Below, one piece after another: positions 17,272-54,423 of a stretch of 64,000 bases of DNA. This DNA comes from Oikopleura dioica. Taxonomy: Eukaryota > Animalia > Chordata. The position numbers and the translations under genes were made by a program. The notes beneath the pieces are model-generated. The model saw nothing but the letters and a program-made list of their open reading frames with translations, made no database searches and had not been told where the DNA came from. The DNA lies in the NCBI GenBank assembly GCA_907165135.1, contig OU015566.1, forward strand, positions 10,602,001 through 10,666,000, given 5' to 3'. How positions within the stretch are numbered: the first letter of the stretch is position 1; every line of letters starts with the position of its first letter.

Positions 17272-17388
17272 AGTAGTTATATCTATGGGTGGGTACCTTG
17301 CGATGCAGGTTGTCTGTGATTGGCTAACACCGTTTGGCGCTCAGTTTAAAAATTGTCTACTTTTTGCTCCCTGCTAAAACGCCTCTGG
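17272..17388 (+). repeat. Left terminal inverted repeat of the Polinton (~117 bp)
   Basis: Reverse complement of 54307-54423; the outer ~36 bp are identical, with scattered mismatches further in. Confidence 0.95.
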
Positions 17389-17867
17389 TTAAATACAATA
17401 CACAAGTGTGGTAAGTTTTTTGGTGTAGTAGTTTATTTTTAGTGTAGTAATTAAAATTATTGTTGCAGTGTAATTAAATCACGTGATCATAATGACTTGT
17501 CGTGTTGGGTAGAGTTCTTGCGCCCCGAGCCAAAATTCTCTCATGTAATCGTATAGCTCTTCTCCTTGAAGATTTCTGTGATCTTTAACACACAATATCC
17601 AAATCGGTGGTGTTGGGCTATAAGGCATTTCTTTTAGTTTTGAATAATCTAAATATCTTTTAACAACAATAATAAACTGTTAATGAACCCTTTCGCACAA
17701 GCTCATCGCTGCTGATTTTTGTAAGTGATGACATTCTAAAAAATGACAATATTTTTCAGAGTCTATCTTGCAGAAAAAACCGATATAATTACGACTGCCG
17801 CAGGCGACAACAATCAACAAACGGTTTCAATGTAAGTTTTTATTTTTTCATGCTTATAAAACACCAG

Positions 17868-18729
17868 TTAATTGTTTTTAGTATCCATTTTCTCTTCAAG
17901 TTCTTTGTTGATTTCAGCCACAAGTTCTTGGATGGTCATTTGATTGCTTGGTTTGGGAAGAGGCATTTTCTCCAGTCTTATTTTCTTTGCTTTGGAAGGT
18001 TGAATCATTTTTCTTTTTTTCGGTCTGAGAAAAATAAAAAATTAAAAATATGCTGTTGCGTCTATTGTTACAAAAACGCGACTGAGCTTACATTGTAAAA
18101 TTCACCCGTGGAAAGTTCTTCTTTAATCATTTCCAGGTAACAGGGCCAGAATTCCATTCGTTGTTTCCTAGAAAAAGCATGTTTCGGCACATGTGTGTTT
18201 TTAATAATTACAGCTCCCGTTCAAAGTATTCCATTGATTTCGCAAGTGCATCGTAAGAGCAGTCACTGGTCTCGATATTCTGTTTACAGCACATGGCCAA
18301 GAAATTTAAATCAAGTATGACTCAATGAATTTCCCCTTTCACTCTAAACAGAATGCCGAGACCAGGGCAGTCGTCGCAATATCCTTGATCTGCAATTATT
18401 GGAATTGCTTTTGTTTTAAATTTACAAATGACATTATCGCATCGATCATCTTTCAATATTTGAATTGTGTGAAAATCTCTTGGAGTAACTAAATCTTCAG
18501 CATAAGCAAGCGCCTCATCGGGATCAATTTCACGAGCCTTTTCTTCGAGTTCTTGTTGTGAGAGCAGTTTAAATTCATAAGCAAGTTCTTTCTTGCGTTT
18601 TTCAATATCCTCTTGTTTAAGTTTGCTGGTATAAGAGCGTCTATACATTCCGGAATATCGTTGCTGGTTGTAAAAATGGCTCATCCAATTTTTATATTCC
18701 TTGCTATTCATTTTGCTATTGTTTTGCAT
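17868..18729 (-). CDS. Polinton orphan gene, spliced, with Cys pairs and a basic C-terminus
   Basis: ORF 18322-18729 (CDNVIC, CDDC) splices in frame to NIETSDCSYDALAKSMEYFEREL/KQRMEFWPCYLEMIKEELST and a last exon ...RKKRKMIQPSKAKKIRL...DTKNN*. Confidence 0.6.
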
Positions 18730-21206
18730 TGATATTTATTGTCGAGTGCATACTGTGGCTTTTTAAACTCTTAAATTCATATTTTTATTTTGTAATACCA
18801 CGTGGCGGCGTGTTTGTCGCGCGCCATTGGTGGCGCTGTTTTGCAAATTGCCTTTTCAATTAAACGTTGTAGAGTAAAGATGATAATACGATGACCATAC
18901 GATCTATCTACTTTGTTTTTAATTTCAAGTCAATAGATACGTGTCGTCACGCATGTTTACATCATTGGTAAATCGTCGATTGGTGCGCATATTCATCATT
19001 CAAGCCGGTTAGGACGCCTTTTTAAAATGCTTTTATTTAAATAAACGTCGCCTTCCAACTGTTATGATAAATGTCATTTGTTTTGACGATTGTAAGTGAC
19101 AATTTGAGGACTTTCAAATCCGACTTTTTTTAACTTGATCAAAAAAGTAATGCTTGACAGGTCCTTTTTTTGTACACTTTTGTTCTTATCACGTTCTCTC
19201 TCTCTCTCTCTCTCTCTCTTGTCTCTTTTTGTCTCTCTGGCTCTCTGGTCGATGACTTTAATTATGTTCAAGTTAGCCTATTCCGATTCTCAGTATTGTA
19301 TAATCATTTGAGTCTCAGTCTTAGGGCTAACGGAAACAAAATAAAAATGTGTGAATTGTAGATTTGTGCCTACATTAATGCGTGGCATCTAATCTTCAAC
19401 TTCCATTTATCTTTTTTGAAAATTGAGGTATTAGTGCCGCGTTATAATGTGGTAAAGAATAAATGTAGAGTGGTCGATGGTATTCAGAAAGCAGACTGCA
19501 CGAGAATTCTGTAAATAATTTTACTAGAACTAACGAGCAGACTGTTTTTTAAATGATTCGCATGATGTAGTTTGTTGACAAGAGTAGCCAAATAAAACGC
19601 TAAAACAACGAATGCGAATTATTCCTCTGTCTTTGCGCATTACTGAGCTAGCTATTGTCATTTTTTGGGTAAATGAGGTCTCTTCGTCGATTGTGATAAT
19701 AAGTTGAGTTGTGCTCCGTCCACTTTATACATTTTAAAAGTTTGTACAAAGAGTTCTTTACACAAGTCGCATAATTTTCATGCAGCTTTCGTCGACTGAT
19801 CATTAAGGATCAAAGTAAAGCAAGCGCTGGTTCTATACAAATTCTCATCTAGTAGAGACCCCACGCATACTAAAATTTGATCTGTAGTAAGAAGCTTGGT
19901 TGTGAGTTTGATCACATGTCGACGCGCTTTTAAACTATTTTTGGGTACTATCAGCGCGATGGCGCTAGAGGATAATATTTTTTTGCCGATGTCGCACTTG
20001 TTTTTTCCTCGCGTTTTTAAAGAAAGACAATCGGGGACCAAAATTCAAAATCATGTGAAAAAGAAGAGAGCTTCGCCCTTTTAGGGTCGGCAATTTTAAG
20101 TAAAAGAACAAGGTCCAAGATTCTTTCAATTTCGATAACAAAAATAGCGAATTTTGTTGACATGTTTGTAAAAGCCTTCTTCTGGCAGTAGCGGGGTTTT
20201 TAAAAAAGCGACAAAGCTCGTTCAATTACGCCAAAGTCTTTTGGCGCTGTATATATGACCCAGTATCTCAAAAACATCTTATCTTCAAAAAAAAATACAA
20301 TGTACATATATACTATCATTGACAGAGCGTAATGGGCAACAGCAAGAACGCAGCTGACATTGATAGCTTTTTTGAAAAAAACTCCGTTTTATTGTTGATT
20401 TTATTTCTTTAACTTATTATCGAGATTTTATTTGTTTTTATTTTATTTATGCCAACGTCACTGTCATGGAATATAGCAGCAAATGAGGATATAGGAACTT
20501 TAGGAACTAATGGAAATCTTTCTTGACAGCAATGTAAAATTTGCGGGCACCTTATTTTACTGCGTTGTCTTTTCTTTGTTATCAAAATTTTGAATCATTG
20601 GTTTTTTATTTTAAAGTTGTCGACCTTAAAAAAATTTTCATTTGCGCTGTGAAGCTGGCAAGTTGAAAAATTCTTACGTGTTAGTATAATTGCATGTATG
20701 CACACACTCATTCCAATTTAAGCGCGCTTGATGATAAAATGCTTTCAAAATCATTTCTGCTGTGGAACAGCCAAGTTGAAAAATTCTTACCTGTAAGTAT
20801 GATTGCATGCACTTGTGCACACTCACTCTTATTTTAGCTCGCCTGATGATGAAATGCTTTCAAAATATAAAAATGCAAAGAAATGAGTAGAAAAGGAATT
20901 ATGTGAATATAAAAAATGAAGAACAAAATCGTCAGAAGCATCCAAATTAAACAAAATGTTGTCTTAAATTTCATGCAATTCGTTGTAATGAGTTATCATG
21001 TTATTGAAAATATTGAATAAAAAGGAAAAAATCGAAAATATGGTGGTGTTGTTGACATGTTTGCAAAAGTGACAAAAAATCTCTCGAACGTGCGCAAAAG
21101 TTTCTAGAATTACTGTTGTTGTGTAAAGCATGTTAAGCATTTTTCGTCAGTTTCTCAAAGTCTTTTGTAGAAGCAAGACGCAGTCGTCGATTTTACTACT
21201 GTTACC

Positions 21207-22131
21207 ATGTCCGAGCAACCGGTAAGCAAGCAAGGTTTTTAGATACAGAAATGTAGGTTTAATTTTTAGTCCCCAGCTGGGTCCTTGATCAACATGGTCT
21301 CCCCCACTCGTAGCTCTCATCCTCATCCCGAGGAATTTCTCCACCACAATTGGGAGGACGTTGACGTCACCCAATTCACCGAGTTTGCTCCTGTTGGCAA
21401 CCTTGGCGACGCTGAACTCGTTTCAGTTAGTAGCTTTGGTTCCAACTTGGGATCTCGGGATCTCCTAGAGATCGACGAGTTGGACGAGGAGGAAGACCGA
21501 ATCTCCCGCAACATTGTGGGCGATGACTCCGCGGCTAACGATCCCACCAACTTCGCCGCCGATCACCCCTTCTTCACCGACGGACCACCTCGACACGTGG
21601 ACCCCGAGCAGCAGGCCGAAATCGAGCGAATCGAGAGGGAGGCCATTGCTCGACGCCGACAACACGCTTCCACGGCCAAGTTGATCAAGGGCGTCACCCT
21701 GTCCAAGCACCCCAACCGATTCCCCGAGCTTCTTCGATACGCCGATGGCGCTTCCTTTTCCCAGTGGGTATGGAGGCCATACGACTGCAGGCTCTCCGTG
21801 GAAGATCTCATGAAAGATGTGCCTTTCGACGAGAATGATCAATGTAAGTTATTTTCAAAAAGATTTAAAAATTAATTTTATTTTAGTCATTCCAGCGCGA
21901 GGCGAAGAAACCCCCACCGCGCTTATGCTTCTGAAGGCATTCTACAGAGGCATGGTTCGCGAGACAACCCAGCTGGAGATGGAGCTGAACTCCGGCGCCT
22001 TTGCTGCGCACCTGGAAACCTCCAAGTGCACCATCCCCCTCGTCAATCTCCAGTTTGGCCACATCCCGCTCTCCGGCAAGAAGGGCTCCATTCGACGTGG
22101 CCGAATCTTCAAAAGACAAAGACGAAACTAA
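21207..22131 (+). CDS. Polinton orphan gene, 3 exons, acidic N-terminus, basic C-terminus
   Basis: MSEQP micro-exon, GTAAG intron, 21285-21875 frame, second GTAAG intron, then the 21817-22131 frame ending RRGRIFKRQRRN*; GC-richer codons; AATAAA downstream. Confidence 0.7.
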
Positions 22132-22660
22132 TGAAAAAAATCAAATTCATTTGATTTTTTTCAAAAAAAAAAACCCTTTTCTGCGGTTCATTTATTCTTT
22201 CAAAAATAAAATTTCTTTGAAATTTACATAAATTTGATAAGGATTGATAATGATTCATCATCATATCCTTTGACCTCGTGTATTTTCGATAAAGCGGTTT
22301 GATTGGTGGTTGATTGTGGAAAAGAGGAGTAGTTTGGTTCAGATTCATTTTTTCAAAACAAGTTGACTTCTAGAAAGATTGGTTTTGCGGCGGCGTCGGC
22401 GGATCGCGCTGTGATTTTCCAGATTTGCTTTTCCGAACGGGAATTTTTCGAGAATTGAATTGAGGCGCGAAAAAACGTTTAATTTTACAAAAAACCGCTA
22501 TCAACTGAAAGAGAATATATTCAGAAGAAAGAAAGAATAAAGAATTTTTTAAATCAAGCTGATAATTTTCACCTGCGCTGTGAGAAATTGACACACTTCC
22601 GTTTTTGATACAGTGTTTTACAACTTTCTCACTGTTCGTTATCTTTTCAGAGGCGGAATC

Positions 22661-23866
22661 ATGGTGGTCATTTTTAGCAAGCTTCGAAAAAAACCAACCG
22701 TTGCAGCGCCAGAAGTGGTTGCGCCAACGCCGTATCGAGCGTGTTGCTCGCCAGAAAGTCACCGCCTTCGCCGAGAAGCAGAGCTTTCTCTGTGAGTGAT
22801 TTTAAAGAGATTTATTATTAAATTTTTTCTAGCGATTTTCCCGTTAGACGACCACGGCCTATCTTGATGCGATCCACAACTACCAACTCCGCTGATCCCA
22901 CTACTACGACTCCGACGATGAGCGATTCCGCCAAAGAGGTAAATTTAAGCGGTCTTTTGGCAAATTTCTTGTACTTTACATAGACGCCAACTGGTGCTCG
23001 CGGCGGTGGTGGCAACAGATTGGCCTCCTGCGAGCAATTCACCACCAAAGCGACTTTCTTCTTTTTGGGCAGTTTTTTCGCCTTGTCTGTCTACTTGTTG
23101 GTCGCCAGCTTTCAGCATGTGTGCAACTGGCCGACGGTCAAGACTGCCAAAGCGAAAGGCGAGGAGGGAAATATCGTGCGAAACCGACGCGAAGGTAATC
23201 AACGGGAATAATTTAAAATTTTTCTAATATTTTATAGGCGTTGAAGAAACCATTGCAATGGTGGATCTTGGCGCCGTCGCGGCCGATTACGAAGGCAGCG
23301 TTGAGGGAAGTGGTGTCAAAGAAGATGCAGCGGGGGCTTTGGCGGAGGGCTCCGGCGGCGACTCTGCTAGCTCTGGTCGGTGGCCTTCTGAAAACGATGA
23401 GGACCCAATGTGCTCATATTGTCGCGATTATTGCTGTGAGTACTCTCAATTTTTTTTCTTGTATTTACACGCTTTATATAGACAAGATCGATCCGCGCAA
23501 ATCTACCGCTGCTTCATCCTTGAACGGTGATGGTGGTGAAGCCGCCCTCGCCGTCGCCGCCGCTGAAGATGGCGGGCCTGTTGATTTGAAACTTCCCAAG
23601 TTGGCCATCACCGAAAACGAGAGCAATCAATTCCCCACAATCAACAACGCCCCAGACAAACTCGAAGACAACTCGCTTCGCTCGGCCAGCTCTTCTTCCA
23701 CTCTCGACTTCGAGTTTGTGGATGGAATCTTCAATGATTTCACATCCGACGGATCTGCTCTCATTCTTGAGAATAATCTCGGCGGTAGCGGCGATAAATA
23801 CGGTTAGTTTTTGTAAAAAAATAGAATTTTGAATTAAAAAAATATCTAGAAACTGATGCTGTTTAA
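22661..23866 (+). CDS. Polinton type II membrane protein with Ser-Gly (EGSG) motifs, proteoglycan-like
   Basis: Five GT-AG introns of ~40-45 nt all keep one frame: MVVIFSKLRKK...TM (TFFFLGSFFALSVYLLVASF)...DYEGSVEGSG...AEGSGGDS...CSYCRDYC...LGGSGDKYETDAV*. Confidence 0.75.
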
Positions 23867-24073
23867 TGACGCCGAAGATCGTCTCACTCTGCTGTCGCTA
23901 CTTCCCCGCCGCGCCGCCTCATCGCTGTTAGAAGCCTCCTTCCAAATAAAAACCTTTTGTCGCTCCATTATTTTGCTCTCCAATTTTGTTCCCTGCGTGA
24001 TACCCTGAATTTAGCGCGGCGGCGACAGCAATGTCCCCCAAAAAACACAAATTTCATTTTGCTCTCTTTTAGA

Positions 24074-24507
24074 ATGGATAAAGCAATTTTCGACTTTATC
24101 CTCAGTTCATTCTTCAAGAAATTCAAAATAACGGTAAGCCGTGTTCGCATTTGACAAAAAAATTGACAAAATATAAAGCTCTCACTACTGGCGGCGGAAG
24201 ATCAATCGACGAATGACAATGACGGCCCGTGTTTTACTTTACGATTGTTCGAAAACTATGCATATGAGGTAAACAAGATCATTTTTACAAACATAATATT
24301 AAAAAGAAAATGTAGATTGATGACGTCAATACGCGACTTGCCGTCATGTGGATCGAAGATGACAATCGTTTCAAATCGTGGCGTGTTGAGAATTGGGTTC
24401 ATTCTCAGCGAATGATTACTTTGTGTCCGATCAGAATCACTGGCAGACCAAAGTACTCGCCGCGATATGATCTTGAATGGGAGCTAGAGTTTCTTCGCGA
24501 TTTTTAA
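24074..24507 (+). CDS. Small Polinton orphan gene, 3 exons
   Basis: MDKAIFDFILSSFFKKFKIT/LSLLAAEDQ...NYAYE/IDDVNTRLAVMWIEDD...LEFLRDF*, joined by two GTAA...AG introns in frame. Confidence 0.6.
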
Positions 24508-24599
24508 TCTGTTCCCAATTGCTGCTACACAAAAATGATGTCAACTGCCAATATTATCTGCTAATTTTTGCTTTTTTAGGCTTTTGAAGTATTATTGTC

Positions 24600-25719
24600 A
24601 TGGGTCGGGTCGCGACAAATGTAAAAAACGAGTTTGTCGCTTTAACAAAGTAAGTTTTCACCGACCATGCAAAGATATAAACAAATTTTTTGTAGCGATT
24701 ATCTCGACAAGAAGATAAATAAGCATGCCAAAAAAGTCGCTTCAAAAGCGTACTCCATGGCCAACAATTACCAGAGCGGTAAGCGACGGCGTGGATCACC
24801 ACAGTACTATGCTCATCGTCGCCACTCGCCAAGTAAGCAAATTGACAGTTTAACTGATTGTAAAAAAATTTTTAGCTGGCTATTTTTATGATCAGCAGCA
24901 CGCGCTTTTTGCTGATCGAGCATCGCTTACACCTTCCCCAGAGCGAAAGAAGCAAAAACTGGCCAAGAAATGCAAGAATGCGGCCATCCTTTTTGCGGAA
25001 AAAACAAAAGACGCAATTCGCGGTAAGTCTTTGTAGTTCAAGCTCTGCATTTTCAATTTCTTAGAAATTGCTTCCGCGCCGCCCAAAATGGCTACAGCGT
25101 TTTCTTTCGGCCCGTACGAGGCCAGATTCGCTCTCTGCCCCAAGAACACAAGCGAGGCTGATGCAATTCCCTCCCTTCGCGAGATCACCCACGCGATCGA
25201 GACTCAAGATGGCGATCGACCGATGATCATCCAAGGCAAGGGGATTTTTTTCCCTTTTCATCTGTTCACTACGCGGAAGATGAATATGGAATCTCTCTTG
25301 CCTGCGATCGCAGCAACTGAGCATCAAGCGCCGCCGCCACCTCCACCCGCTCGTCGATCTATTGCCTACACTCCAGGTAATTTTTTTTTGCTTGCGCATT
25401 TTGTTTACTTGTATTTTTAGTGAGCAGCAGCAACAACAACAACATCATTGATGATGATGATGATGAGTTGGCTCACGAGGAGGCGGTGGTAATGGAAACA
25501 TTGCCGCTGCCAAAGATCAGCTCTCAAGATCAGGCGATTTTGGCAATTTCTTCGGACAATGATTCCGAGATTGAGTTTAACAACCCATTGCTCCGCCGCC
25601 ACCGCCGCTCGACTGCTCCACCCGCTCGACCACCACCACCACTGTCTGCCGGAGAGACACCAATTCAGCGAGAACAGCGCCGCCGATCTGCGATGAAAAG
25701 TCGCTCGGCTAGAAAGTAA
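24600..25719 (+). CDS. Polinton orphan gene, multi-exon, basic/Pro-rich nuclear-type protein
   Basis: Exons matching ORFs 24667-24891, 25088-25420 and 25420-25719 join in frame through GTAAG/GTAAT introns; KRRRGSP, PERKKQK and RRRSAMKSRSARK basic motifs. Confidence 0.6.
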
Positions 25720-25935
25720 GAATGCTTGCTTCTAAAACTGCCATCGGGTCTTTTCCAAATTTATCACACTGCTTCTAAACTGCTTGCTCTGCTGATTTGC
25801 TTCTTAATAATTAGCTGCTTATTCCACAATTAATTAACCCAATTACTCATGTTTATGGCATCAAAATACATCATTTCGGTGTTGTTCAAATTTAATTGTT
25901 TTTATCTTTGGCATTTTTAGATAATTGAAAATAAA

Positions 25936-28871
25936 ATGGGGCGCCCGATTCGTCGCGCGCACCTTGAGTCCTCTGAAAGCGATTCCGAATCGCAAGCAAG
26001 CAATCTCATTTCGCCAGGGTCCTTTTCACTCCAACTTCCACCATCATCGTCGTCGAGTGACTCTGAGACAGCGGCGTCGTCGGCGGCGGCGGCGAAAGTT
26101 ACTCCGCGTCGAGCAAAGACATCTTCTTCGCGTCGAGCAGAAACACCTTCTCCGCGGCGAGCAAAAACACCTTCGCCTCGAAAAACGTCTCGACCTCCTG
26201 TATCACCTCCTTACAAAAAGATCATTTCTGGTCTTTCGTCATCGATTTTGCACTCTGCTGGCACCAAGAAAAATGCCAAGGTAAACGTTTTTTGTAAAAA
26301 AAGCTCTTTTTAATACTTGATTCTAGCAAATGAGCATTTCTGATTATATCAACAAGAAGCCAAGCAAGGAGGTGATGGAAGGGGTGGTCCCACTTTCTTC
26401 GTCTGACGATGAGTACGAGGAGAAACAACAACAACAACAAGGCTAGGTTCAATATAGAGCACGCTTATTCTTTTTTGTCGTTTTAAATTGTTGTTGGTTT
26501 GAACCCCATCTATTAGAAAAAAAGACGAAAAAAAAGAAGGCCAAAAAGAGTGCCAAGACTGCAAAACCAGCAACGCCGCCGCCGCCATTCGAAAGTCTGC
26601 CAGAAGTTGGCATCAAAAAGAAGCAGAATCGAAAAAAAAAATCTGCTAAAAACACGCTTGTTATTCCACCAGCTATCCGCGATCTTTCGAAGCCGAAAAA
26701 GAAAATCTCTGCCGCTCGATCTTCGCCCCCAAAGCTTTCACCGATGAAAGATCCATCCAAAGAGGTTATTGAGCTCTCGTCAGAGACATCCGACGCCGAA
26801 GAAGAAAACACCGCTGCCGTCGCCGCCGCCGCTAATCAGAGCGCGTTTTTCAAGCGACCTTACGACGAAAGCGAAGGCGAGTTGGTGATTGACGAAGAGC
26901 ACGAGGAAGTCGCGCAACCTCCAAAACCTCGAAAAACGAGCAAGGTGCAGCGAGTTCCTAATCCGCCAAAGAAAAGAAAAACTGCGAATGCGGCAGAAAA
27001 AGCAGCGAAAAAATCGACAGTGGCGAAAAGACGAACCGATACTCCTCGCCCGCGCCGATGCAAGCCGGTCCCTCCAAATTGCATTTCGCAAATGGACTAC
27101 AATCGATCTCGGCTGTTTCAAAAGGGAGATCCAGAAACACCAACAAATGATGCGGTCGGAAAGCCAACTGAGCCGCGTATTCTCCCTGTCGTCGATAAAA
27201 AGTCGACGGTTCCTCGCGATCCAATGCCTAATTTGGAAAACACGGTGACAATCGAGGAGGGTGAATTTCCGCTCATCTTGCCAAGTGATCCCAAGGTGGA
27301 TGAAGAAGTTGGCGAGCTTCTTCGACGAACGGACGCGCTCGAAATTACGGACAGCGAGGACGAGTCTACCGGCGAAATTAAGAAGAGAATCGAAGCGTTC
27401 AAAAAAGAGGCACCAGTTTGGCCAATGAATCGCTACGCCTTGCGAAAAGCTTTTAAATTGGCCTACGATTCCAAATATGGGGTGCGACCGACAATGGCTG
27501 ACTCTCGAATTGGCGCTTGGTTGCAGCGAGTCGCCCGAAAGTACCACCATGCAAAGCGCTATGGTCAACCGCTGAACGAAGCCGAATATCGCATTTTCAT
27601 TGAAAATGTAAGCAAGGGCTCCTCGCTCGAAAGTTTTTTCAATGAGCCGGGGCTCGAAGTTGGCCCGAGAGTCGTCTGGGATAAGATTGGCAGCTTTTTT
27701 CCCATCTTCGCCATCGATGGATTCGTGTTTTACTACATCAAGGATCTAAAAATTTGGGTGAGTTTTTATTTTGTTTTCAAAAATATAACGACGGCCTTTA
27801 TTAGGTTCACTTCGAGAAGAGCGGCTGGCGACTTGTGTCAATCACTGACAAAGATCTCGGCCATCCAGCTATTGTTTTGGCAACGCTCAACGACATGCCG
27901 CCAATGGTTTTTCCGTGGCCCTTTCCGTCGGCTGAGGATCCTTACGCAAAGGCGAAGTCGACCATTCTACTCGTTTGTGGATTCATCCCTTTGGGTGCTT
28001 ATCCGGAATACGCGCTTGAAGCTGTCGACATAAGTAAAAAGGTTTGCACGCGCCCAAGTACATACACTCTGTTATCATAATTGTTTTCAAGGTTTTACAG
28101 ACGCTTTGCATCGAAGAGCAAATCACTCAACCGCCCTCAGCTGACCAGATGATCGCTCTCAACGAGCGACTTGAGAATAAGTGCTACAGGATGGTCAATA
28201 CAGCGTTCAAGATGGATCTCTTGAACCCCGAAGATGGCCTCACCGATGAGGAAATTCTAGAGGTGCGATACAATGGCCTCATTCTCAAAATGGACGAGAT
28301 GCTTGGCTCTCCAAAACCACCAACAAAGCTTCCTCTGAAAAACCGCGATCCATTTGAGGCAATTGTTGGCGCTCTCCCGCGTGTTTTCACTGAAAATGAA
28401 GATGTCTGGCCTCAGAACATTTTCATCAAAACGCTGATTTACGCCAACTCGTGCCAAAAATTTACAGAAAATCCTGCAATGATGCAGCTTGTAAGTGAAT
28501 TGTTTTTTTTCAAATTTTAAAATTAATTTTAGTTTGGCGTCGGCGAAATTTTGCCAGCATCAGTCGTCGCTTGGCAACAGTGGCTCAATTACCCGCTGCT
28601 CGATTTGAAGATGAGCACCGCGGAGAATAAGCGAGCTCAAGTCAACTTGGAGAATTTCGTCACCAATTACAAGCCAATGCCGCCGACTACGTCTTCCAAA
28701 GACTCCACCACTGCCACGAATGCGCCAGATCCGACTAAAGACGCCCAAATCCGCAAGAAAAAGGCTCGAGCGCTGACTCTTGAGCAGATGGAAGAGGCTG
28801 CGACTCCGTACGGGCTTCATGAATCCGACGATGAAAACATTTCCTCTGTTCCTCGCGCAAAAATGCCCTAG
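25936..28871 (+). CDS. Large spliced Polinton orphan protein (~900 aa): S/T-P-R repeats, K-rich region, SIM-like motifs, globular C-terminal half
   Basis: ORFs 25936-26313, 26744-28033, 27835-28080, 28044-28520 and 28551-28871 link in frame through short introns (one needs a GC donor); repeats RRAxTPSPR, motifs EVIELSS and EGELVID. Confidence 0.65.
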
Positions 28872-28921
28872 AAACTTTTTTGATATTTTCTTTTATTTAG
28901 ACATTTGAAAAAGGGGGGATC

Positions 28922-30983: not shown

Positions 30984-31237
30984 TTATACAAATCTCACAA
31001 CAATTTTATCAATTAACAACATAAATTGACAATTGAGTGGATCTTCTTGCGTCTATAAAAAATCGCAAAATTACCTAACTACCATAAAACGCTTATGTGA
31101 ACAATATTCAAGTATTTTAAATCAATTTTTCAAATTGACTCTAACCAATAATTTTTTTGCGCGATTTTAGCAAGTTTAACTACAAAGATCAAAACAAAAA
31201 ACTAAAAATTTCACACTCAACCCAATAACAAACCAAT

Positions 31238-31680
31238 GCCACCCTGACGAGCCTTTTCCAGCGCCGGCGCTTACACTCATCCCTGACGGGCTCCTCCGCC
31301 GGCGAAGCCGGCGCTTACACTCAACCCTGACGGGTCGGCTCCGTAGTTCCCTGACGGGCCCCTTTTCCATGGCCGGCGAGGCCGTACGGCGTCGCCGGCC
31401 ATTCCAAAGACGGGCCGTTCCAGCGCCGGCGAAGCCGGCGCTTACACTCATCCCTGACGGGCTCCTCCGCCGGCGGTGCCGTACGGCGTCGCCGGCTCCG
31501 TAGTTCCCTGACGGGCCCGAAGGGCCCGTCCGCGAGGCGTAGAACCTGCGCATGCGCAGGTTCAAGCGAGCCAAGTTCGCGCGAAGCGCCGGGGCGGGCG
31601 CGGGCCGCGGAGCGGCCCTGGCTCAAAAATTTTCGCTCGCGAGCGACCGCGTACGCGCTCGCTCGCTCGGCTCAAATTTT
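31238..31680. repeat. GC-rich island of short repeats and hairpins inside the Polinton
   Basis: Six CCCTGACG(GG) motifs, repeated GCCGGCGCTTACACTCA, palindromes GCCGTACGGC and GAACCTGCGCATGCGCAGGTTC, and GAA-loop hairpins GCCGGCGAAGCCGGC and GACGGGCCCGAAGGGCCCGTC, all within AT-rich flanks. Confidence 0.85.
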
Positions 31681-31721
31681 TTCGCAACCTTGTGCGCTTG
31701 AAAATAACAAAATGTTTTTAG

Positions 31722-32527: not shown

Positions 32528-32799
32528 GAAAATCACACACACAAATTTGCACTCACACACACACAAATGCCGCTGCACGGCGCTGGTACACTTGTCAACG
32601 ACGACGGCGGCGGCGCCCCACCACTGACTATTTTTATTCCTGTCAATCAACTTTTTGTTAGTTCAAAATTCTTGAATAAAAAGTTCACTCACACAAAAAA
32701 AAACGCTGAGTCTTTTAAAATTTAAACGCTCTTCTCTTGTCGGCATTTTGTGCATGCTTTTTGCTGAAGCAGTTGCAGCAGGTGGAAAAGAGCAAAAAA

Positions 32800-38576: not shown

Positions 38577-38695
38577 ACTTTAAAAAATACTAACATTCTT
38601 TCCACGTTATTTTGCTTCGAATCTTTACTAATAATAATGCGGTGTGCTTTTTTTTTCTAATAAAACAAACAACAAAATAATTGTTTTGTCTCAAT

Positions 38696-39638: not shown

Positions 39639-39684
39639 TCTTAATAAATTTTTTTGAAACAAAAATACCCGTCTATAATTTTGT

Positions 39685-45277: not shown

Positions 45278-47092
45278 TTAAGAGCCGGCTTTTCTTTTCC
45301 TCGAATTCATTTTGCTTCTGTCAGCCATTGTCGATAAAATTGTCGCCTCTAAAAATAATCAACTTTTGTAACAAAAACAAAACAAACCTTTTCGATTTCC
45401 ATCAAGCATAATAGCGTCGATTGGTATCTTCATCACAAGAACATCCCAATTTTCTTCGAGAATTTTCTCAAACGTTATTCTTGCAGTAATTGTAGAATTC
45501 TCCCCTTGTCGATCGTCAAATAGCAAAGGAACCATCCAAGATTGATTCTGAAATTGAAAAAAATCCAATCCTCCTCCAATCGATTTGTTTTCATATCGTC
45601 CATTGTGCATCAAGAAATTTTGATAGTGCTCCAGCGGATCAGTCCAAGGTGTCAAAAAAGCATTGTAATTGTCGACCAAAACCTCAAATTCCTTTATTTT
45701 AAAACCCTCCTCATGCATTGTCGTCTTTGTTATGCATCGTTGATAATCCGGTCTTTGACGCTTCTTATTAGACATACCAGTCAAAACGATCATATAAGGC
45801 ACCGGTCCAGAGCTCAACTCTACCTCATAAGTGGAGAGGCCCTTTGACAACACGTGAATTTTTAATCTAGGATAAAAAAACGGAATCTTGAGCATTTTAT
45901 CACTGTTACCAACTTTAATTGGTTTTTCGCATTCTCTCGCTTTGCAAAAAACACTCTTGAGCCAAAAATTATGAAGATTTGGCTCATGACTTTCTATACG
46001 AGCAGACTGTGCTGTTGGAATCAAATCTCTTTGTAGCCAAAAGCAAGCATAACTTTTGTCGTTAATCTTCTTGACTCGAATTTTTGGAACTTTCTTAGTG
46101 ATTTTATGCGCTTTAAAAGTCGCCTCCTTACAAATAGATGTTTTATCGGTTGCAGGTACTTCATTGACATTTAGCATCTGTTCAAGTGTTGAGACATCAT
46201 ACTCGCCACTTGTTATCTTATCTTTATAATCGTCAGGATCTTGAGGTTTCTTTGGAATTGCACAATCGCACTTATTCTTAGAATCATGAATGAGCGTTTT
46301 AGTCTCAAACTCGACTCCAGAATCTTCATTAAAAGGATATTTTAGCTCATCTGAGAAAAATTCCGTATCCTCTGATCGACACTCGATATAATCACTATGC
46401 CTCATGATATAATTTTTTGTTGGAGCAAGAATGGTATTAAACCAGAGGCGAGAAGCAGGAGGTAAGACTCGAGCTTGGCGAGCCAATCCATGAGAAATTG
46501 GTGTTTTAATCTTATAAATATGATTTTTAAACTCATATTTGACTTCCCGTTGGTCTTGCCCAATTTTAATATATCGCGCCGATTCAACGTCTTCTTCTCG
46601 CCATATAGGCGTTGCATGTAAAACTCGATTCTCAAGAGCTGTCAAATTATTACTCTTCAATCTATAATAATTCAAATCAGCGGCATCCAAATCGTAAGAA
46701 TCAAAATGACCTTCGGGAAAAAGCTCAATCTCTTGTGCTGAAGGTGAGTAGTTTAACTTTTTTATAAAATGATTAAAAAAAGTATACTCCAAACCCTCTG
46801 TGTAGGAAGAAAATATCGTACTGTCCATAATGTTAATATCCATTTTTGAAAATATCTTTGATCCAATCTCATTATCAGGAACGCAATTCGATGGTATTTC
46901 AATATCAAATTCAAATTGCATTTTGTCCAACTTGATGGGAAGTTTGTCTTTTGGAGTTTCAAATCGCCATGTAAAGGGTAAATCTTTAACTCCCAAACGC
47001 CTGACCACTTTTAACCCATTAAATGGATCCATCGGACGTTTTGAATCTTTATAAAATAAAAGATTTCCATAATCGCTTGTTGACTCGGGCAT
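45278..47092 (-). CDS. Major capsid protein (double jelly-roll, Polinton PY family)
   Basis: PDNEIGSKIFSKMDINI...KKLNYSPSAQ, PISHGLARQARVLPP, GPVPYMIVLTG and ITARITFEK...IMLDGNR follow the Polinton MCP pattern; a putative 39-nt intron (45349-45387) adds a C-terminal exon ending RKRKAGS*. Confidence 0.8.
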
Positions 47093-47187: not shown

Positions 47188-47223
<36 letters not shown>

Positions 47224-47462
47224 GGATAAACTGTGATTGCTAAAAAGAGAGTTTATTTAAGAGAATTAAAAAAAGAGTTGAATGAAAATTTTTCTCTTAT
47301 CTTTAAAAGAGAATATAAAATCAAACTTATTATAGTCAATTGGATAACAAAGCAAAAAATCAGGGACGCGTATTTGTAGTTTTTGTAGAATCCATCGATA
47401 AATCCAGGAGAGCACTAAAAATTTTCTTTAAAATATGTAAGAACCGCATAGCCAGACCTTCA

Positions 47463-47639: not shown

Positions 47640-47695
47640 TTGAATACACTTTAACAATCTTAATAAAAAACAATTAATTTTCAAAATATTGTTCT

Positions 47696-49801
47696 TTATT
47701 TCATCTCAGAAATAGGAATAACAACATTCAATTCATTTTCATAATATCGCCTAGATTGAGGATGACCGAATGAATTCACCAACGAAAATGTGGGAACTCT
47801 TGCTCCCTGATGTATTTGAGTAACTTGAAACAAATCTCTTGACCATTTCTCTTTAAAACCTTTGACAAAATTCTTTTTAGAATTAGCGGATCTTGCTATT
47901 CTTACAACGTCGCCTAATCCTACAAGCGATTTTCGCTTTTTATTATAAAGAGATCTTTTTTGTTCAAGATAATCAAATAAAACACGGGCATTTTTACGCG
48001 TTATAACAGAAGGAGCAACTCCAATAGTCGAATGCACAGAATTATTAATAGCTGTGTTGACTTCTTGAAGTATGTGGATCCAGCGTTGAACGCCACCAGA
48101 AGCAGTAAAATAACGACCCAAGCGAGCTTCCAACGTTCCGCTAAAATTTTTTGTTAGAGTAAAAATCACTTATAAAATACTCACTTGAATCGCTCGACAA
48201 GAGCCGCCTTGTGCCTACCCTGAAGATGAACAGGTGTCATCGACCAACGGGCAAGCAAATCATAAGTATCTTTTTCAAATTCAACGCCTTGATCAGAACA
48301 AAAAAGTGTGTCCAGGAAGATCTTCGCCTATTTTAACAAAAATTGATTCCAATTCTTTGGCAATTTCAGCAGATTTAAGAGATACTAAAGGAGCAACAAA
48401 ACTTTTACGCGAAAGACCATCAATAACAGTGAGAATATATTTGTAGCCATTGTTTAAATGGGCATAATTTTTGAACGCTGCAATAGTGTCGGAAAACAAA
48501 CATGTAAACAAACCAGTAGCGATAATTGGATTACGCTCGAAATTTGATTTAAATGGTTTATGTAAAGATATAGCATTATTCATACGTTTAAAGCGAGCCA
48601 AATTCATACCACTATAAAAAGAAGGGTTTTTACTATTATAAAACAAATCAAGGGCTGGACTTGAACGTTGAGAAAAAAGCGGCGCCTCAAAAGTTGCGCT
48701 GTTAACCCCAGAAGTTGTCGATGTCTGCTCCCCCACTTCCTCTTCCGCCGCTGGGGCCTCCGTCGCCGCCGATTGATTCATTCTCGTCAATGTAGAGTCG
48801 ATCGTCATCGGACTCCTCATCTGATCGAGATTCAATCCCGTCTGGGTCATAATAGTGGGATTTTTTGATTGCGCTTGAAGTTGGAGAGACGGTGTTCTTA
48901 CTAGACGATTTGGGTTTATTAGCGAGTTTTCGCGATTTTGCGTCTCGAACGGTAGTGACACGTCCAGCGGTTCTCTTTCGCTTTGATCGCTTTGAAATGC
49001 GTTCACTCTCGTACCCGCCGTCTTCGTTAGGGTCGACGTCGGCGTCGTCATAAGCGTTGTTGTAAAATGGCGTTTGCTCTCTGATGCGGCGTCTTCCGTT
49101 GATTCGGGCAACTCTTGAATTCGATTTGACGCTATTGGCAATAGATTCCGCCTCGGAGATGTCTTCGTCACTTGCAATTGAATCGGAAAACTCAATTGCC
49201 CTTTTTCGTTTCGAGTTCCGATTACTTGCGTTAGAAATTGCACTCCTCCATTTTCGGTAATCATTGCTGGTGATAGGATACTCTTTGAGGCGACTTGGGC
49301 GAAGGAGTGGTTTACGGGGATTTTTCGTAACTGGTTCAGGTTCCGCGAAATTTGATCTTTCCACACGGCCAGATCGCTTTGATTTGACAACTGGACTTGC
49401 TGAATCGGCGTCGGCTCCCCGTCGTTTACGAATTTTGACGCGTCGCGCATCTCTTCGGGCGCTTGTTGCTCGAGTAACGGGCTTTCTTGAAAGCTTACTA
49501 CGCTTAGATCGCGCTTGGAGTTTTTGTCGTCGAGTTTTTGCCTCTTGCTCGAGTTTTTTGATTTTGAATTCTTCCTCGTCTTCCGAGTTTGAGAATTGGT
49601 CAATTTCTGCTTCGCTTTCTCCATCGCTTTCTCCTTCGCTTTCGCTTTCCGATAAGCTTCTTTTTCTGCTTTTTCTCGTTGCTCGATCACTTCCGTAAGG
49701 AATTTCTCTGTTGCATACACCGGCGATAGTGCGGGCGCTCGCGTCCTCGTCGGTCTCATAATCGGGATATGGTTCTGCTTTGGTCTTTGGTGCAATAACA
49801 C
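47696..49801 (-). CDS. int: Retroviral-type (rve/DDE) integrase with long N-terminal extension and C-terminal chromo-like part; one frameshift
   Basis: LFYNSKNPSFYSG, FSDT, YILTVIDGLSR, then in the shifted frame SDQGVEF and KAALVERFNGTL, NNSVHSTIGVAP, KGFKEKWS, YYENEL; 44-nt intron 48141-48184; extra T in a T6 run at ~48300-48305. Confidence 0.93.
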
Positions 49802-49901
49802 GAATTCGATTTGTCTTTGGATTCAGTTCCCAAAATGAAGCAATATTATCCAAAATTGATAATCGAACGAAACAACCACCGTTTACCAGTGCGTTATTCA
49901 T
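48702..49901 (-). CDS. 399-aa R/S/K/D/E-rich protein overlapping the integrase frame
   Basis: ATG directly after a splice acceptor (AAATCAG/GATG); open for 399 codons; mixed acidic and basic tracts. Confidence 0.65.
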   Translation of the reverse strand: MNNALVNGGCFVRLSILDNIASFWELNPKTNRIRVIAPKTKAEPYPDYETDEDASARTIAGVCNREIPYGSDRATRKSRKRSLSESESEGESDGESEAEIDQFSNSEDEEEFKIKKLEQEAKTRRQKLQARSKRSKLSRKPVTRATSARRDARRVKIRKRRGADADSASPVVKSKRSGRVERSNFAEPEPVTKNPRKPLLRPSRLKEYPITSNDYRKWRSAISNASNRNSKRKRAIEFSDSIASDEDISEAESIANSVKSNSRVARINGRRRIREQTPFYNNAYDDADVDPNEDGGYESERISKRSKRKRTAGRVTTVRDAKSRKLANKPKSSSKNTVSPTSSAIKKSHYYDPDGIESRSDEESDDDRLYIDENESIGGDGGPSGGRGSGGADIDNFWG

Positions 49902-50141
49902 CCTGATTTAAAAAAATAGCAAAATAAATTAAATTTACGACTTACCTTGGGTCAAATTGCAGTTTTTACTGTTTGCGGCTTCTTCTTCAGAAGAATAATT
50001 ATAAATGAATAAATACAAACAAAAATTATATTATATAATTATAAAAATGGTGCTAAGACGACAATCACGCCACCATGCGGATTTTATAAATAAGTGAGTA
50101 TAAATACTCTTGCTCTTGCACCATTCTATCACAACTCAAAA

Positions 50142-50567
50142 ATGTTTCAACATCTTAATTTTGATCAACTTCAACAAATCAGCGCCAAGTCAAAACGAGC
50201 TAGAATTTTGAAATCAAACTTCAACCATCACGTCATCAAAACAAAGGAGCAATATTACATCAAGGCAAGCATTGCGGAACTTGTTGACGCTGAAGGAGAA
50301 GAAAAGTTCGGCATTGAAAAATTGGAGCTTAACAAGACGGCTACCTTTGCGCTAATTGAGAATAATTTCAATCTTGACTGTCCGAAAACACGCAACTGGT
50401 TCAAAAAAGAAGTGCCAGAAGCTCTTCGAAGAGAAAACACTCTTATCGTCTCAATCTACGAGTACCAGCCTCAAGCCGAAGAGTACAAAGGCAAATACAT
50501 CACCGATCCTGAATCTCAGATCGACGGGCGATTCGTCATCTGTGGATTGAAATGCCCCAGCATATAA
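50142..50567 (+). CDS. Small Polinton orphan protein upstream of the ATPase
   Basis: ORF of ~141 aa from ATG 50142; overlaps the ATPase start by 16 nt. Confidence 0.65.
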   Translation: MFQHLNFDQLQQISAKSKRARILKSNFNHHVIKTKEQYYIKASIAELVDAEGEEKFGIEKLELNKTATFALIENNFNLDCPKTRNWFKKEVPEALRRENTLIVSIYEYQPQAEEYKGKYITDPESQIDGRFVICGLKCPSI

Positions 50568-51283
50568 TCAAATGGGTGCCCGATCCGCGCTTTCAACATC
50601 CTAGCGCGCTTCTTATATCGGGAACCACTGGTGCAGGTAAAAGTTATTTTGTAAAAAATATTATTGAGAAAGAGGGGATAGTAGGAGACATTAAACATAT
50701 TTATTATTTTATGCCTAGATTAGAAAACTTGGATATTCAACCATTGGCTCATCAACAATTATACCTGATGGAAGGTTTGCCTTCTAAAAACTGGGTTGAT
50801 GATACATTTAAAAGTGAAAATAAAAATTGTATGATAATTGTTGATGATATGTGGTCTAAATGCGTAGAAGATCCAGTCATTGAATATCTTTTAACATATG
50901 GTCGTAGGCACTTCAATGTCTCGCTCATCTTTATCGCTCAAAACTTTTACGAAAAGAGTCGAAAGGCGATCACTCTCAGGTACGTTGTTTACATGTTTGC
51001 AATTTTATTAAACCTTATATTTAGAAACTGTATGACTGCATATGTTTTATTCAAAAATAATACCGACACTGGTATGAATAAAACAATTGCAACGAAAACA
51101 GGAGAAGTGGACGCCTACAATTCAGCAATGAAACTCTTTAAAGAAAGAAGAATTCCTGCCTACTCGTACGTTATATTCAATCGAGATACCATAAACATGG
51201 ATCAAGCTACTGTACTTACAAATTACTTTGGTGAAATACCAGGTCTTGGACCTTGGTTATGGATTTTCGGGTATAATGACTGA
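50552..51283 (+). CDS. A32/FtsK-HerA-like genome-packaging ATPase
   Basis: DPRFQHP, Walker A GTTGAGKS, Walker B MIIVDD, GRRHFNVSLIFIAQN; removing a 45-nt intron (50980-51024) gives ITLRNCMTAYVLFKN, closer to the family pattern. Confidence 0.93.
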   Translation: MPQHIIKWVPDPRFQHPSALLISGTTGAGKSYFVKNIIEKEGIVGDIKHIYYFMPRLENLDIQPLAHQQLYLMEGLPSKNWVDDTFKSENKNCMIIVDDMWSKCVEDPVIEYLLTYGRRHFNVSLIFIAQNFYEKSRKAITLRYVVYMFAILLNLIFRNCMTAYVLFKNNTDTGMNKTIATKTGEVDAYNSAMKLFKERRIPAYSYVIFNRDTINMDQATVLTNYFGEIPGLGPWLWIFGYND

Positions 51284-51287
51284 TTTG

Positions 51288-51318
<31 letters not shown>

Positions 51319-51498
51319 AATAAAATTGGGCATGTAAATAACTCGTTGTTTTTATTTTTGTTTATTTCATTGATAGAATGAATTGGGAATATGTCGTTTT
51401 TCAAGTTTGGTCAAAAAAAGATTGAATATTATTTTATCAAATTGGCAAAGAATCAAATAAAATAAAGAATGATCGAGGCAAGTCGCGCATTATGGTGT

Positions 51499-51816
51499 TT
51501 AGAGCAATCGCAATTGAGTATACTTGAATCGAACAGAGTAGCTCCGACGAATGGTGGCATATTTCAAAGTCTCCTCATCGTAAGTTGACGGTAAGCAAAT
51601 GGGTTCCTCTTTTGAGATGCGTTTTACAGATGCAACGGAAGCAGCTGTAATTGCTCCAACAGGTTTGATTTCTTCCGCATCGCAAAAGCATTCTTCAATC
51701 TCACTAACTGGATATCGAAGAGTAGTCACGATTGGATTTGCTTTTTTGAAAAATTTGACAATTCTTTTAGTAAAAGACTTTTTCTCTGGCTGAATTTTTT
51801 CAATCTTGACAATCAT
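51499..51816 (-). CDS. Small Polinton orphan ORF (105 aa)
   Basis: ATG-initiated ORF in AT-rich context; no motif recognised. Confidence 0.45.
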   Translation of the reverse strand: MIVKIEKIQPEKKSFTKRIVKFFKKANPIVTTLRYPVSEIEECFCDAEEIKPVGAITAASVASVKRISKEEPICLPSTYDEETLKYATIRRSYSVRFKYTQLRLL

Positions 51817-52590
51817 GATTGAAAATTTTTGTCGTTGTTCTGTCGTTGGTTTGTTTGTTTGTTTTGACGATTGGTTGTATGATATGAATATGATAGAAAG
51901 CGCTCTGTATTTATAGGCCCCGGCGCTAGAGTTTTTTCCTTTTCAAAAAAAAAGTTTGTTTTGATCTTTGTCATGTTTTCTAATCGCCGATCGAATAAGT
52001 GCATAATTACTGCTTCACCGCCGCCGCTGCCATATGATCTGACCACTGATCGCAATATACAATTAACAGCTACTAAAAATCGGCACTTCCGCTCGCCAAA
52101 GACAATAACAAGCAACAATCTCTCTAGAACACAATATTGACATAAAATGAAAATTTTGTAAACAACCATCGCCCCTTTCTTGGCTAAAGGGTGAGAGTGT
52201 TAAACTACAAAGAGAGTTGCTCGAGTTCGAATCTCGACATGAACATACGAACATATATCAGCTATCAATTCCTCACAATCAAAAAATTTTTTTTATTCAC
52301 AAGCCATAAATAACAGACACAAATGCGACGCTAAATTTTTAAACAACTCGGTCAAACTGATCAAATTAAACTACAAAATGAGTACCCTTCTTTGGTGAAA
52401 GATCTACAAACTACATAACAACCGCACAAACATCAACAAAAAAACACCATTTTTTTCTAGAAAAATAATTGTTTTTATTACAGCTCAACTTTGGAACAGA
52501 TAAAAAGTTTTTGCGCGCGCTTGAATCGGTGGTGGTGGTGGTGGTCTTGTATCTGCTCACTTGGAGCGTAGAGGTGATGGTGGTGGTGGT

Positions 52591-53217
52591 TTACTGACGG
52601 TTGTTCATGCCGGGGCCATCGACGGCGAAAGATCGACCTGACCGCGTGGTGATGACGACTCGGGATGCGCCAGAACGGAGATCACTCCACAAATGGTGGA
52701 AAGCCCGTTCATAGGACTCCTCCAATCGAAGAAGTTCGGTCTTCAACAGGTCTCGGCCAGCGGCATCCAAATTTGACGCAAGAGCGTCGTAGATTGCTTG
52801 CCAGGAGGGTTCGCGTGGGAGAGCTTCCTGGTCGAGAGGCTGCTCACCAGGGAGAACAACTGTTTCGGGTCCTTAAAAAATATTTAATAATCAAATTACA
52901 AAGATCAAAATATAAACTTACGTCGAGACCCCACAGAAGATTGGAGAAGTTTTCCCAATTTCTGCTTGGATTTTTGGGCAAAAGCCCGGAGAGGAGCCTG
53001 TTCCCGATCGCGGTTGCCACCGGCGCGACCAGTTTCCACGCTCTCCGTTTCCATATCGGCGGTGGTGGTGGTGGGATCCTCGTGGATGGTGGCCGAAGAG
53101 ACGGTTGGGGTGTCGAGAAGTTCGACGGCATTCGCTAGGTTAGCTTGCGCCAAACCAATGCTTTGTCGAACCTTGTTCTTCGAAGCTCTGGTTTTAGCAG
53201 AGGTGCTGGCTCGCTAA
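52591..53217 (-). CDS. Polinton orphan gene, spliced (5' exon not located)
   Basis: Exon after TTTAG (RASTSAKTRASKNK...VGSR), GTAAG intron, in-frame exon PETVVLPGEQ...GMNNRQ* (stop 52591-52593). Confidence 0.6.
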
Positions 53218-54306
53218 ATTATTTTTTATTTACTTGTTTGGCGTAAAAAATTAGCGGATGATAACCATTTAATTTAAGTTTCATTTTAATTTAAGTTGAA
53301 AAAGTTTATGAAAATTTGTGTTTTTTAATGATTATGGTGTTAGAGTTTGACGAACTAAATTTAAGAATGATGATTTATATTAAGTTTCAGATTTTTAAGT
53401 TTTTTAAGTTTATAAAGATATTATTTTTGTTTAGTTTTATAGTGTTTGATCCTAACTCCATTAAGGTTGCTAAAGATGAGTGATTATTTTGATCAAATTT
53501 ATATTCGGTCATTTTGTATAAAAAAATTTTTTCATTTAACAAATTTATAGTATTTAGATTGCGGAAATGCGTGTGAACTTGTGTGTACTTACGACCATGG
53601 CGAAAGGTGGGGGTAGGTAGGGCAAAGTCAGGTGACGACGCGCGAGAACTGGAAATTGAGAAAAAATCGAAAAACGACTTTTCTCTTTGCTGTTCCAAAG
53701 CAAACTGACGTGTTTTCATCTCTTGCCCTGAGGTAAGCAGCTGTTCTAGAGAAAAATTTGCTTGTTTTTCTTGGAAATGGAGAAAATTACCACGAATTTG
53801 AAAAACAAAAACAAGTGATTCTAGAAGCGTCTCGATGCGATTGCAGACCAATGGTGGTGGTGGTGGGGCTTGGCCCGCGGCGGGATAATTATCTTTGGCA
53901 AATCGATAACAAATCCGAATGGCATTTGATCAGTCTACAAAATACAAAATAGAGAAAACACGCTTTTTACTTTTTTTTGTTTTTTTTCTTCTTGAAGAAT
54001 GAATAATGCAACAGAGGATGATGATCTTTTTTTCGATAAAGATGGTCTAAACGTTTTGAATTTCTCTTTTAATTATTTTCAGATATGATACGATTATTTG
54101 AAATCGATAAAAGAGTATTCCCGCCAGTCTGGTTTCTAAACAAAGAAGATACATATGAAAATCGAAAAGAATATTATGAATATATGAAACGATTATGGAA
54201 AACAACGAAAAGACTGCACCCAAACACCTGACTAATTATTTTATTGTACTGTACAAAAAATACACGTCAATTAACATAATTAACACACTTGTTGATCTGA
54301 ACATGC

Positions 54307-54423
54307 CCAGAGGGCGATTTGCAGGGAGCTAAAAGTAGACAAATTTCAAACTGCGCGCCAAACGGTGTTAGCCAATCACAGACAACTTGCATCGCAAGGT
54401 ACCCACCCATAGATATAACTACT
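54307..54423 (-). repeat. Right terminal inverted repeat of the Polinton
   Basis: Ends ...AGATATAACTACT, followed by the TSD CGCAGC. Confidence 0.95.

Follow-up and report, generated by a model that had tools for sequence, protein, structure and literature searches.

A 37-kb Polinton/Maverick-type element with a long arm of spliced accessory genes on chromosome 1 of Oikopleura dioica

What kind of element occupies 37 kb of chromosome 1 (chr1) in Oikopleura dioica, and do the spliced genes that fill about half of it belong to the element or to the host? O. dioica serves as a laboratory model and is an important grazer in the sea, and its genome is among the smallest of animal genomes and among the poorest in transposons. 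The window that we analyzed is a stretch of 64,000 nucleotides (nt) from assembly GCA_907165135.1 (contig OU015566.1, positions 10,602,001 to 10,666,000 of the forward strand), and all coordinates given here are positions in that window. The element spans 17272-54423, or 37,152 bp, of chr1 of O. dioica OKI2018_I69. A first-pass annotation of this DNA had described a complete, unusually large and intron-rich virus-like element with an adenovirus-like organization. Our analysis indicates that it is likely to be one endogenous element of the Polinton/Maverick type (a "polintovirus"), with a spliced arm of about 17 kb that is carried by the element family, and that this copy is probably non-autonomous.

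The limits of the element were set by terminal inverted repeats (TIRs) and by a target site duplication (TSD) in the flanking DNA:

17266-17271, no strand: left copy of the TSD, CGCAGC, from comparison of the flanks
17272-17388, plus strand: left TIR, beginning 5'-AG, from the inverted-repeat pair
54307-54423, minus strand: right TIR, ending CT-3', from the inverted-repeat pair
54424-54429, no strand: right copy of the TSD, CGCAGC, identical to the left copy at 6/6 bp, from comparison of the flanks

The TIRs form a pair of 117 nt that is 91% complementary, and one of its 10 mismatches falls in the outer 40 nt. Further inward the likeness continues more weakly and fades at about 190 nt (82%). 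No further long inverted or direct repeat pair was found within the element other than low-complexity triplet runs, and no repeat is common to the element and its flanks. Together, the TIRs and the 6-bp duplication show a genuine unit of 37,152 bp that entered the chromosome in one piece. The element is therefore a single insertion, with the bounds, repeats and duplication that the first-pass annotation had given it.

To identify the genes, profile scans were run with Pfam on about 55 open reading frames (ORFs) and with NCBIfam on nine, each frame or exon being searched singly. Over these ORFs the two scans yielded the polymerase and the ATPase, plus sub-threshold matches to an integrase. Single-sequence profile search has low sensitivity for this lineage, and homologue and fold searches were also used. 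The core genes recognized all lie in the right 14.5 kb of the element, in the arm to which they had first been assigned, the probable integrase being the weakly supported member of the set:

39934-45145, minus strand: gene for a DNA polymerase of family B that is protein-primed (pPolB), broken or interrupted, from Pfam PF03175, relatives and phi29
45359-47092, minus strand: major capsid protein (MCP) with a double jelly roll, 577 residues, an uninterrupted ORF, from homologues and fold search
47696-49759, minus strand: probable rve-type (DDE) integrase gene, broken, bounds approximate, from weak profile matches
50552-51283, plus strand: packaging ATPase of the A32/FtsK type, open throughout, from PF04665

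The downstream ORF of the polymerase gene matches the Pfam family DNA_pol_B_2 (PF03175) with an E value of 3.5e-13 and 49.7 bits, against a cut-off of 25.8. An exhaustive search returned 900 pPolB homologues. The closest full-length relatives are metagenome ORFs of 1807-1849 residues (P0014, P0016, P0163 and P0165), which align across both polymerase ORFs of the window, and two of the full-length relatives share the natural stop. When a profile of the relatives was compared with the PDB, phi29 polymerase was the top match (E 1.7e-4). PDB searches with single protein sequences gave blanks or noise for both polymerase ORFs, as they did for the MCP, three integrase pieces and the ATPase. The whole polymerase would comprise about 1,750-1,850 residues, including an N-terminal extension of about 800 residues that is conserved in the lineage. 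At 43800-45145 on the minus strand, an N-terminal domain of about 250 residues is kept among the Oikopleura-clade polymerases. The only recurring matches of a structural model of the N-terminal ORF (pLDDT 50), to OTU domains and to phi29/RB69 polymerases, were non-significant (E >= 0.24) and were set aside.

A search of 5.8 billion proteins found MCP homologues in five clusters, at 39-47% identity and 97-99% coverage. Foldseek comparison of an AlphaFold (AF2) model of the protein (pLDDT 60) returned 29 matches in the PDB and 32 in BFVD at E <= 0.001, nearly all of them double-jelly-roll capsid proteins. The matched folds are those of iridovirus, Sputnik, mavirus, PBCV-1, giant viruses, adomavirus, adintovirus and PRD1, with probabilities of up to 1.0. 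Judged by the modeled fold, the predicted product of 45359-47092 is a double-jelly-roll MCP.

The ATPase matches the Pfam family Pox_A32 (PF04665) with an E value of 1.2e-8 and 35.2 bits (curated cut-off, 22.8). Its gene contains an in-frame GT..AG candidate intron of 45 nt at 50980-51024, the only intron candidate of that kind in a core gene. The gene that lies 5' of the MCP gene on the same strand probably encodes an rve/DDE integrase. One of its pieces matches both Pfam rve (E 0.2) and an IS481-family transposase (E 0.07) over the same residues, each below threshold, and the remaining pieces, searched separately, gave no profile match. By eye, the later pieces resemble the rest of a DDE core, which serves as a lead only. 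The 5' 1.1 kb of this gene is of low complexity and is open in two frames.

Two hallmark genes were looked for in addition. For an adenain-like protease, the ORFs scanned gave no match to Peptidase_C5 or a related family beyond one of E 0.14 on an integrase piece, short exons not having been scanned, and a scan with a short catalytic-motif pattern, which carries no weight as evidence, produced no usable match. For the penton, a single-jelly-roll minor capsid protein, there was no Pfam or NCBIfam match in the same set. The first-pass annotation had called the element complete. The evidence does not support that description for this copy, in which pPolB lies in two frames, the integrase lies in three, and penton and protease were not found.

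Is the copy damaged, or does it only appear so? The tally is one frame change in the polymerase gene, at least two in the integrase gene, and none in the MCP and ATPase genes, with no in-frame stop in any core gene; pPolB is free of in-frame stops over 5.2 kb and the MCP gene over 1.7 kb. The pPolB frame change sits in a linker of low conservation. There the window sequence exceeds its relatives by about 125-220 nt, and an intron may be present. A uniform scan for short canonical introns, which recovered 3/5 model introns, gave a single 316-nt candidate at this change, at chance level, and the pPolB genes of relatives are single ORFs. The integrase changes fall within the catalytic core. There, homologous residues of successive frames abut or overlap and none of the predicted short introns fits, which points to small indels. 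Homopolymers of 5-6 nt are present in all three zones of frame change, and the OKI2018_I69 assembly is based on Nanopore reads, with polishing by Racon and Pilon (PMC8008620), so assembly error may account for the changes. Because the MCP and ATPase genes are open and free of in-frame stops, the damage appears slight; it is probably recent, or in part an artifact of assembly. As read from the sequence, this copy is probably no longer autonomous.

An alternative is that the copy is intact and potentially active, the frame changes being assembly errors or unrecognized introns, non-canonical ones included, and the penton and protease being too divergent or too finely spliced to be found. We consider this unlikely. 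The absence of in-frame stops and the perfect TSD are what an intact copy would have, and the extra sequence in the pPolB linker and the homopolymers in each zone fit it as well. A Nanopore assembly polished with short reads is weakest in repeats (PMC8008620). Moreover, the MCP and the integrase also escape Pfam, so blanks for penton and protease weigh little. However, the intron scan fits neither integrase change, and its pPolB candidate is near chance; the integrase frames leave no room for an intron; and the polymerase genes of relatives are uninterrupted. The TIR arms, too, differ at 10/117 positions.

The polymerase clade, at 39-55% identity, includes PAR.g12375, chr1.g1460 and XSR.g14641/g14647 of O. 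dioica, CBY15417/CBY40627 of the Norwegian strain, and sequences from JGI, ENA, Logan and NCBI assemblies. Close relatives are confined to O. dioica and metagenome assemblies. Outside this Oikopleura/metagenome clade, polymerase identity is at most 33%, and the only named match is a chytrid fungus. One NCBI contig of 13.5 kb carries relatives of both the capsid protein (P0005) and the polymerase (P0165). The public model PAR.g12375 (P0015) is a chimera, in which the first ~400 residues are capsid protein and the remainder is polymerase. Its capsid part, two-thirds of a capsid protein, is 34-41% identical to P0001-P0005, and the fusion implies the same capsid-polymerase adjacency at that locus.

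Polintons and Mavericks are not mentioned in the paper on the OKI2018_I69 assembly, in which 44% of repeats are unclassified (PMC8008620), and the term "MAV" occurs solely to label a class, in one paper on O. dioica chromatin (PMC5240408). No description of the lineage was found in the searchable literature, in agreement with the earlier suggestion of a possibly undescribed lineage of tunicate polintoviruses.

We then asked whether the left arm is part of this family. Its features are as follows:

21201-38650, plus strand: accessory arm of about nine ORF blocks, bounds approximate, from G+C content, ORFs and the absence of any Pfam domain
26588-28868, plus strand: accessory gene, paralogue of PAR.g9795 (P0169), with 73-87% identity over its 716 residues
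32754-36675, plus strand: accessory gene, the same as public model chr1.g2860 (P0006), an exact match of 1130 residues
35465-37881, plus strand: region similar to O. dioica PAR.g9797 (P0007), with 57-70% amino acid identity

The arm has a G+C content of 0.458; the core arm has 0.380 and the flanks have about 0.40. Its predicted products are low-complexity, basic, acidic or Q/T/P-rich, and no Pfam domain was found in the arm ORFs. Hydrophobic, membrane-like segments occur in only two ORFs. By composition alone, this suggests that the products are nuclear or chromatin-associated rather than membrane proteins. GC-rich repeats of about 48 nt lie inside the arm at 31263-31518 (3 copies, 79-96%).

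The largest left-arm ORF is 100% identical to Oidioi.mRNA.OKI2018_I69.chr1.g2860, which maps to the window as five exons separated by introns of 44, 75, 49 and 364 nt with GTAAG donors. This exact match assigns the window to chr1 in the Okinawa assembly of O. dioica, an appendicularian tunicate. The annotation that contains this model was made with AUGUSTUS and RNA-seq hints, and the median intron of the genome is 49 nt (PMC8008620). The first three g2860 introns are close to that median; the fourth is the 364-nt one. The gene at 26588-28868 matches PAR.g9795 in three frames, in the pattern of a spliced gene, with 77% identity, and has a metagenome homologue (P0170) that is 41% identical. The next model after PAR.g9797, PAR.g9798 (P0013), consists of the C-terminal 402 residues of a polymerase and is 93% identical to the pPolB of the window. 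The order g9795, g9797, g9798 on PAR is the order found in the window, and between the two copies the arm proteins are 57-77% identical as against 93% for the polymerase. Paralogues in the same order beside a polymerase of 93% identity indicate that the arm has descended with the element family rather than being host DNA of this locus. Syntenic host orthologues of the left-arm genes had been named in the first-pass annotation as grounds for refutation, and on this point the paralogues on PAR speak for the element.

The 10-12 spliced orphan genes of the first-pass annotation were not confirmed: the arm comprises about nine plus-strand ORF blocks between 21 and 38.6 kb, and only three of these have support from public gene models or homologues. 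The description of the element as intron-rich is accurate for these accessory genes but does not extend to the MCP gene, which is one uninterrupted ORF, or to pPolB, which in relatives is a single ORF.

In three stretches of the element, two frames of one strand are both open over 326-449 codons: 32918-33896 and 37119-38466 on the plus strand and 48705-49822 on the minus strand. Shuffles of codon order reach such double-open lengths in 0-15 of 2000 trials, and T-poor composition was rejected as the cause. At 32.7-33.9 kb the second open frame is that of g2860 exon 1, so that a transcript which kept the first intron (44 nt) would encode another protein, of about 380 residues and with one hydrophobic segment.

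Could the arm nevertheless be host DNA, either genes trapped between two partial Polinton insertions or genes recently captured at this locus? Its G+C content is unlike that of the core, its genes have short introns of the host type and no viral domain, and host-derived cargo has been documented in nematode Mavericks (bioRxiv 10.1101/2022.07.12.499685). We nonetheless find this origin improbable: the full 37 kb lies between the two copies of one identical 6-bp duplication, and the only O. dioica paralogues of two arm genes are PAR g9795 and g9797, numbered immediately ahead of the polymerase model g9798, with no further host paralogue of either gene found among ~5.8 billion proteins. Ancient capture of the arm by an ancestor of the family would be compatible with the explanation that we prefer. 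Still less credible is a normal-sized Polinton whose extra 17-20 kb represents one or more nested, unrelated mobile elements. Such nesting would explain why the element is about double the usual 15-25 kb (PMC6431247) and would account for the sharp difference in G+C content, but there are no internal pairs of long terminal repeats or TIRs of >=30 nt (low-complexity matches aside), no reverse transcriptase, transposase or other mobile-element domain occurs in the arm ORFs, and the arm is collinear in the PAR copy.

The explanation that we favor, a single Polinton/Maverick element with a family-borne arm in a copy that is probably non-autonomous, also has points that weigh against it. The evidence for the arm consists of computational gene models and of protein-level synteny taken from gene numbering, not of DNA from a second copy. 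The frame changes may be Nanopore/Pilon indel errors in a repeated element (PMC8008620). Confidence in the MCP model is modest, with TM-scores of about 0.2 beside its pLDDT of 60, and support for the integrase is below significance for every single piece. Finally, neither a penton nor an adenain-like protease was found among the ~55 ORFs scanned.

How does the element compare with known systems? Polintons/Mavericks were reportedly described by Kapitonov & Jurka in 2006 and Pritham et al. in 2007, and as "polintoviruses" by Krupovic et al. in 2014; AG/CT termini are said to be typical of them, again from Kapitonov & Jurka in 2006. The element has TIRs, AG...CT termini, a 6-bp TSD, pPolB, an A32/FtsK ATPase and a double-jelly-roll MCP, and it may share with that group a DDE integrase, here a probable remnant. 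By its ends, duplication, polymerase, capsid protein and ATPase, it is a Polinton/Maverick. TSDs of 6 bp are those of Mavericks (PMC8097293). Polintons are typically 15-25 kb and range up to 40 kb (PMC6431247), so that the element, which had been called unusually large, is at the upper end of known sizes but still inside the published range. Vertebrate Mavericks have eight conserved ORFs and are intronless (PMC8097293), whereas about half of the window element consists of spliced accessory genes. It differs from Polintons further in its long polymerase with the conserved N-terminal extension, in the low identity (<=33%) of its polymerase clade to outside sequences, and in that the protease and penton, described as two of the best-conserved genes of Polintons, were not found. 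What is distinctive is thus a 17-kb spliced arm conserved between copies, a long polymerase, an undetected protease and penton, and close relatives confined to Oikopleura and metagenomes.

The closest precedent for the arm is in nematode Mavericks, whose cargo is 2-5 kb, GC-rich, poorly conserved and intron-bearing (Widen et al., bioRxiv 10.1101/2022.07.12.499685). Both have a GC-richer, less conserved, intron-bearing region inside the TIRs. In contrast to the nematode cargo, the arm is about 17 kb long and has about nine ORF blocks with no recognizable family; its place is between the left end of the element and the polymerase gene's 3' end. No Pfam match to a herpesvirus gB-like fusogen, of the type in the nematode cargo, was found in any scanned ORF. 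Adintoviruses (Starrett et al. 2021, cited in PMC11957031) resemble the element in being animal-associated, mid-size linear double-stranded DNAs that have pPolB, an integrase (only probable in the element), a jelly-roll capsid protein of hexon-like form and accessory genes whose functions are unknown, and adintovirus capsid entries rank 14 and 46 among the BFVD fold matches of the MCP. No sequence-level link to adintoviruses was found, and the lineage has no known free, non-integrated genome.

The first-pass annotation had likened the organization of the element to that of adenoviruses. The features in common with Adenoviridae are genome size class, inverted terminal repeats, protein-primed replication, a jelly-roll fold and host splicing, together with a polymerase block that runs leftward and spliced genes that run rightward. 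That the element is a specific relative of adenoviruses rather than a Polinton is nevertheless barely credible: adenovirus hexons are present among the MCP fold matches but at probabilities of 0.25-0.54, below the 0.8-1.0 of iridovirus, virophage, PBCV-1 and giant-virus capsids; the MCP is of the short type (577 residues), compared with about 900 residues and towers in hexons; the ATPase is of the A32/FtsK type; no Adeno_* Pfam family, as would be expected of pTP, DBP, fibre or 100K genes, was found in the ~55 ORFs; and the element has a probable integrase remnant and a target duplication. To our knowledge, adenoviruses have neither an integrase nor a target duplication. The membrane proteins that the comparison had implied also come down to two ORFs with membrane-like segments. 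The adenovirus likeness is one of layout and design, by analogy, and not one of membership.

Other features of the element lie around these genes:

17482-17679, minus strand: small ORF that faces outward, immediately inside the left TIR, with its homologue at the right end
38696-39743, minus strand: two overlapping open frames downstream of pPolB, no family match
50094-50564, plus strand: ORF of 157 residues that overlaps the start of the ATPase gene, no family match
51284-54072, no strand: right sub-terminal 2.8 kb, short ORFs only, no identification
54073-54228, plus strand: small ORF that faces outward, immediately inside the right TIR, with its homologue at the left end

The two end ORFs have a local alignment score of 71 over 50 residues. 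This homology just inside both TIRs indicates an ancestral inverted repeat of greater length, with coding sequence in it. On the left side of the element, a 113-nt unit is present as two tandem copies (81%) at 20638-20866 and may be a duplicated small exon. A (CA)n microsatellite (51292-51321) directly follows the ATPase gene. Scans for tRNA genes and Rfam families gave no matches. To the right of the element, at a distance of 330 nt, a 56-nt satellite occupies 54751-55809 with 19 copies at 98%. In the left flank, identical arrays of a 17-nt unit with 3.9 copies each lie 1.3 kb apart at 9647-9712 and 10958-11023 and may be the ends of another repeat. Long open frames on the minus strand of the left flank (3605-9515 and 12387-14027) are presumably fast-evolving host genes, the sole Pfam match being a calcium-binding EGF domain in 12387-14027.

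From what is known of the family, a mechanism can be sketched for such elements. The linear DNA would be copied by protein-primed synthesis from the TIR ends, and the integrase would insert it with a 6-bp staggered cut. In intact members, the ATPase would package the DNA into a capsid of the jelly-roll protein. The host nucleus would transcribe the accessory genes and splice their transcripts.

A bolder idea, which we hold to be distinctly unlikely, is that the element belongs to a still-circulating lineage of nuclear double-stranded DNA viruses of appendicularians that doubled its genome by means of a host-style spliced module of about 17 kb, perhaps with overlapping frames and intron retention, so that an adenovirus-like mode of expression would have evolved independently within Polintons. 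The uninterrupted polymerases of 1.8 thousand residues and the capsid genes of relatives on metagenome contigs of 6-13 kb hint at circulation, and the three double-open stretches, longer than codon shuffles give, hint at expanded coding.

A Polinton/Maverick family of 37-kb, virus-like elements, represented by several diverged lineages (on chr1, PAR and XSR, as well as in the Norwegian strain), would be a sizeable undescribed part of the O. dioica mobilome. Its accessory arm would represent a second and much larger case of intron-bearing cargo inside a Maverick, and it bears on how Mavericks move genes and how viral genomes grow. If the metagenome relatives are free genomes, appendicularians would have their first candidate DNA virus.

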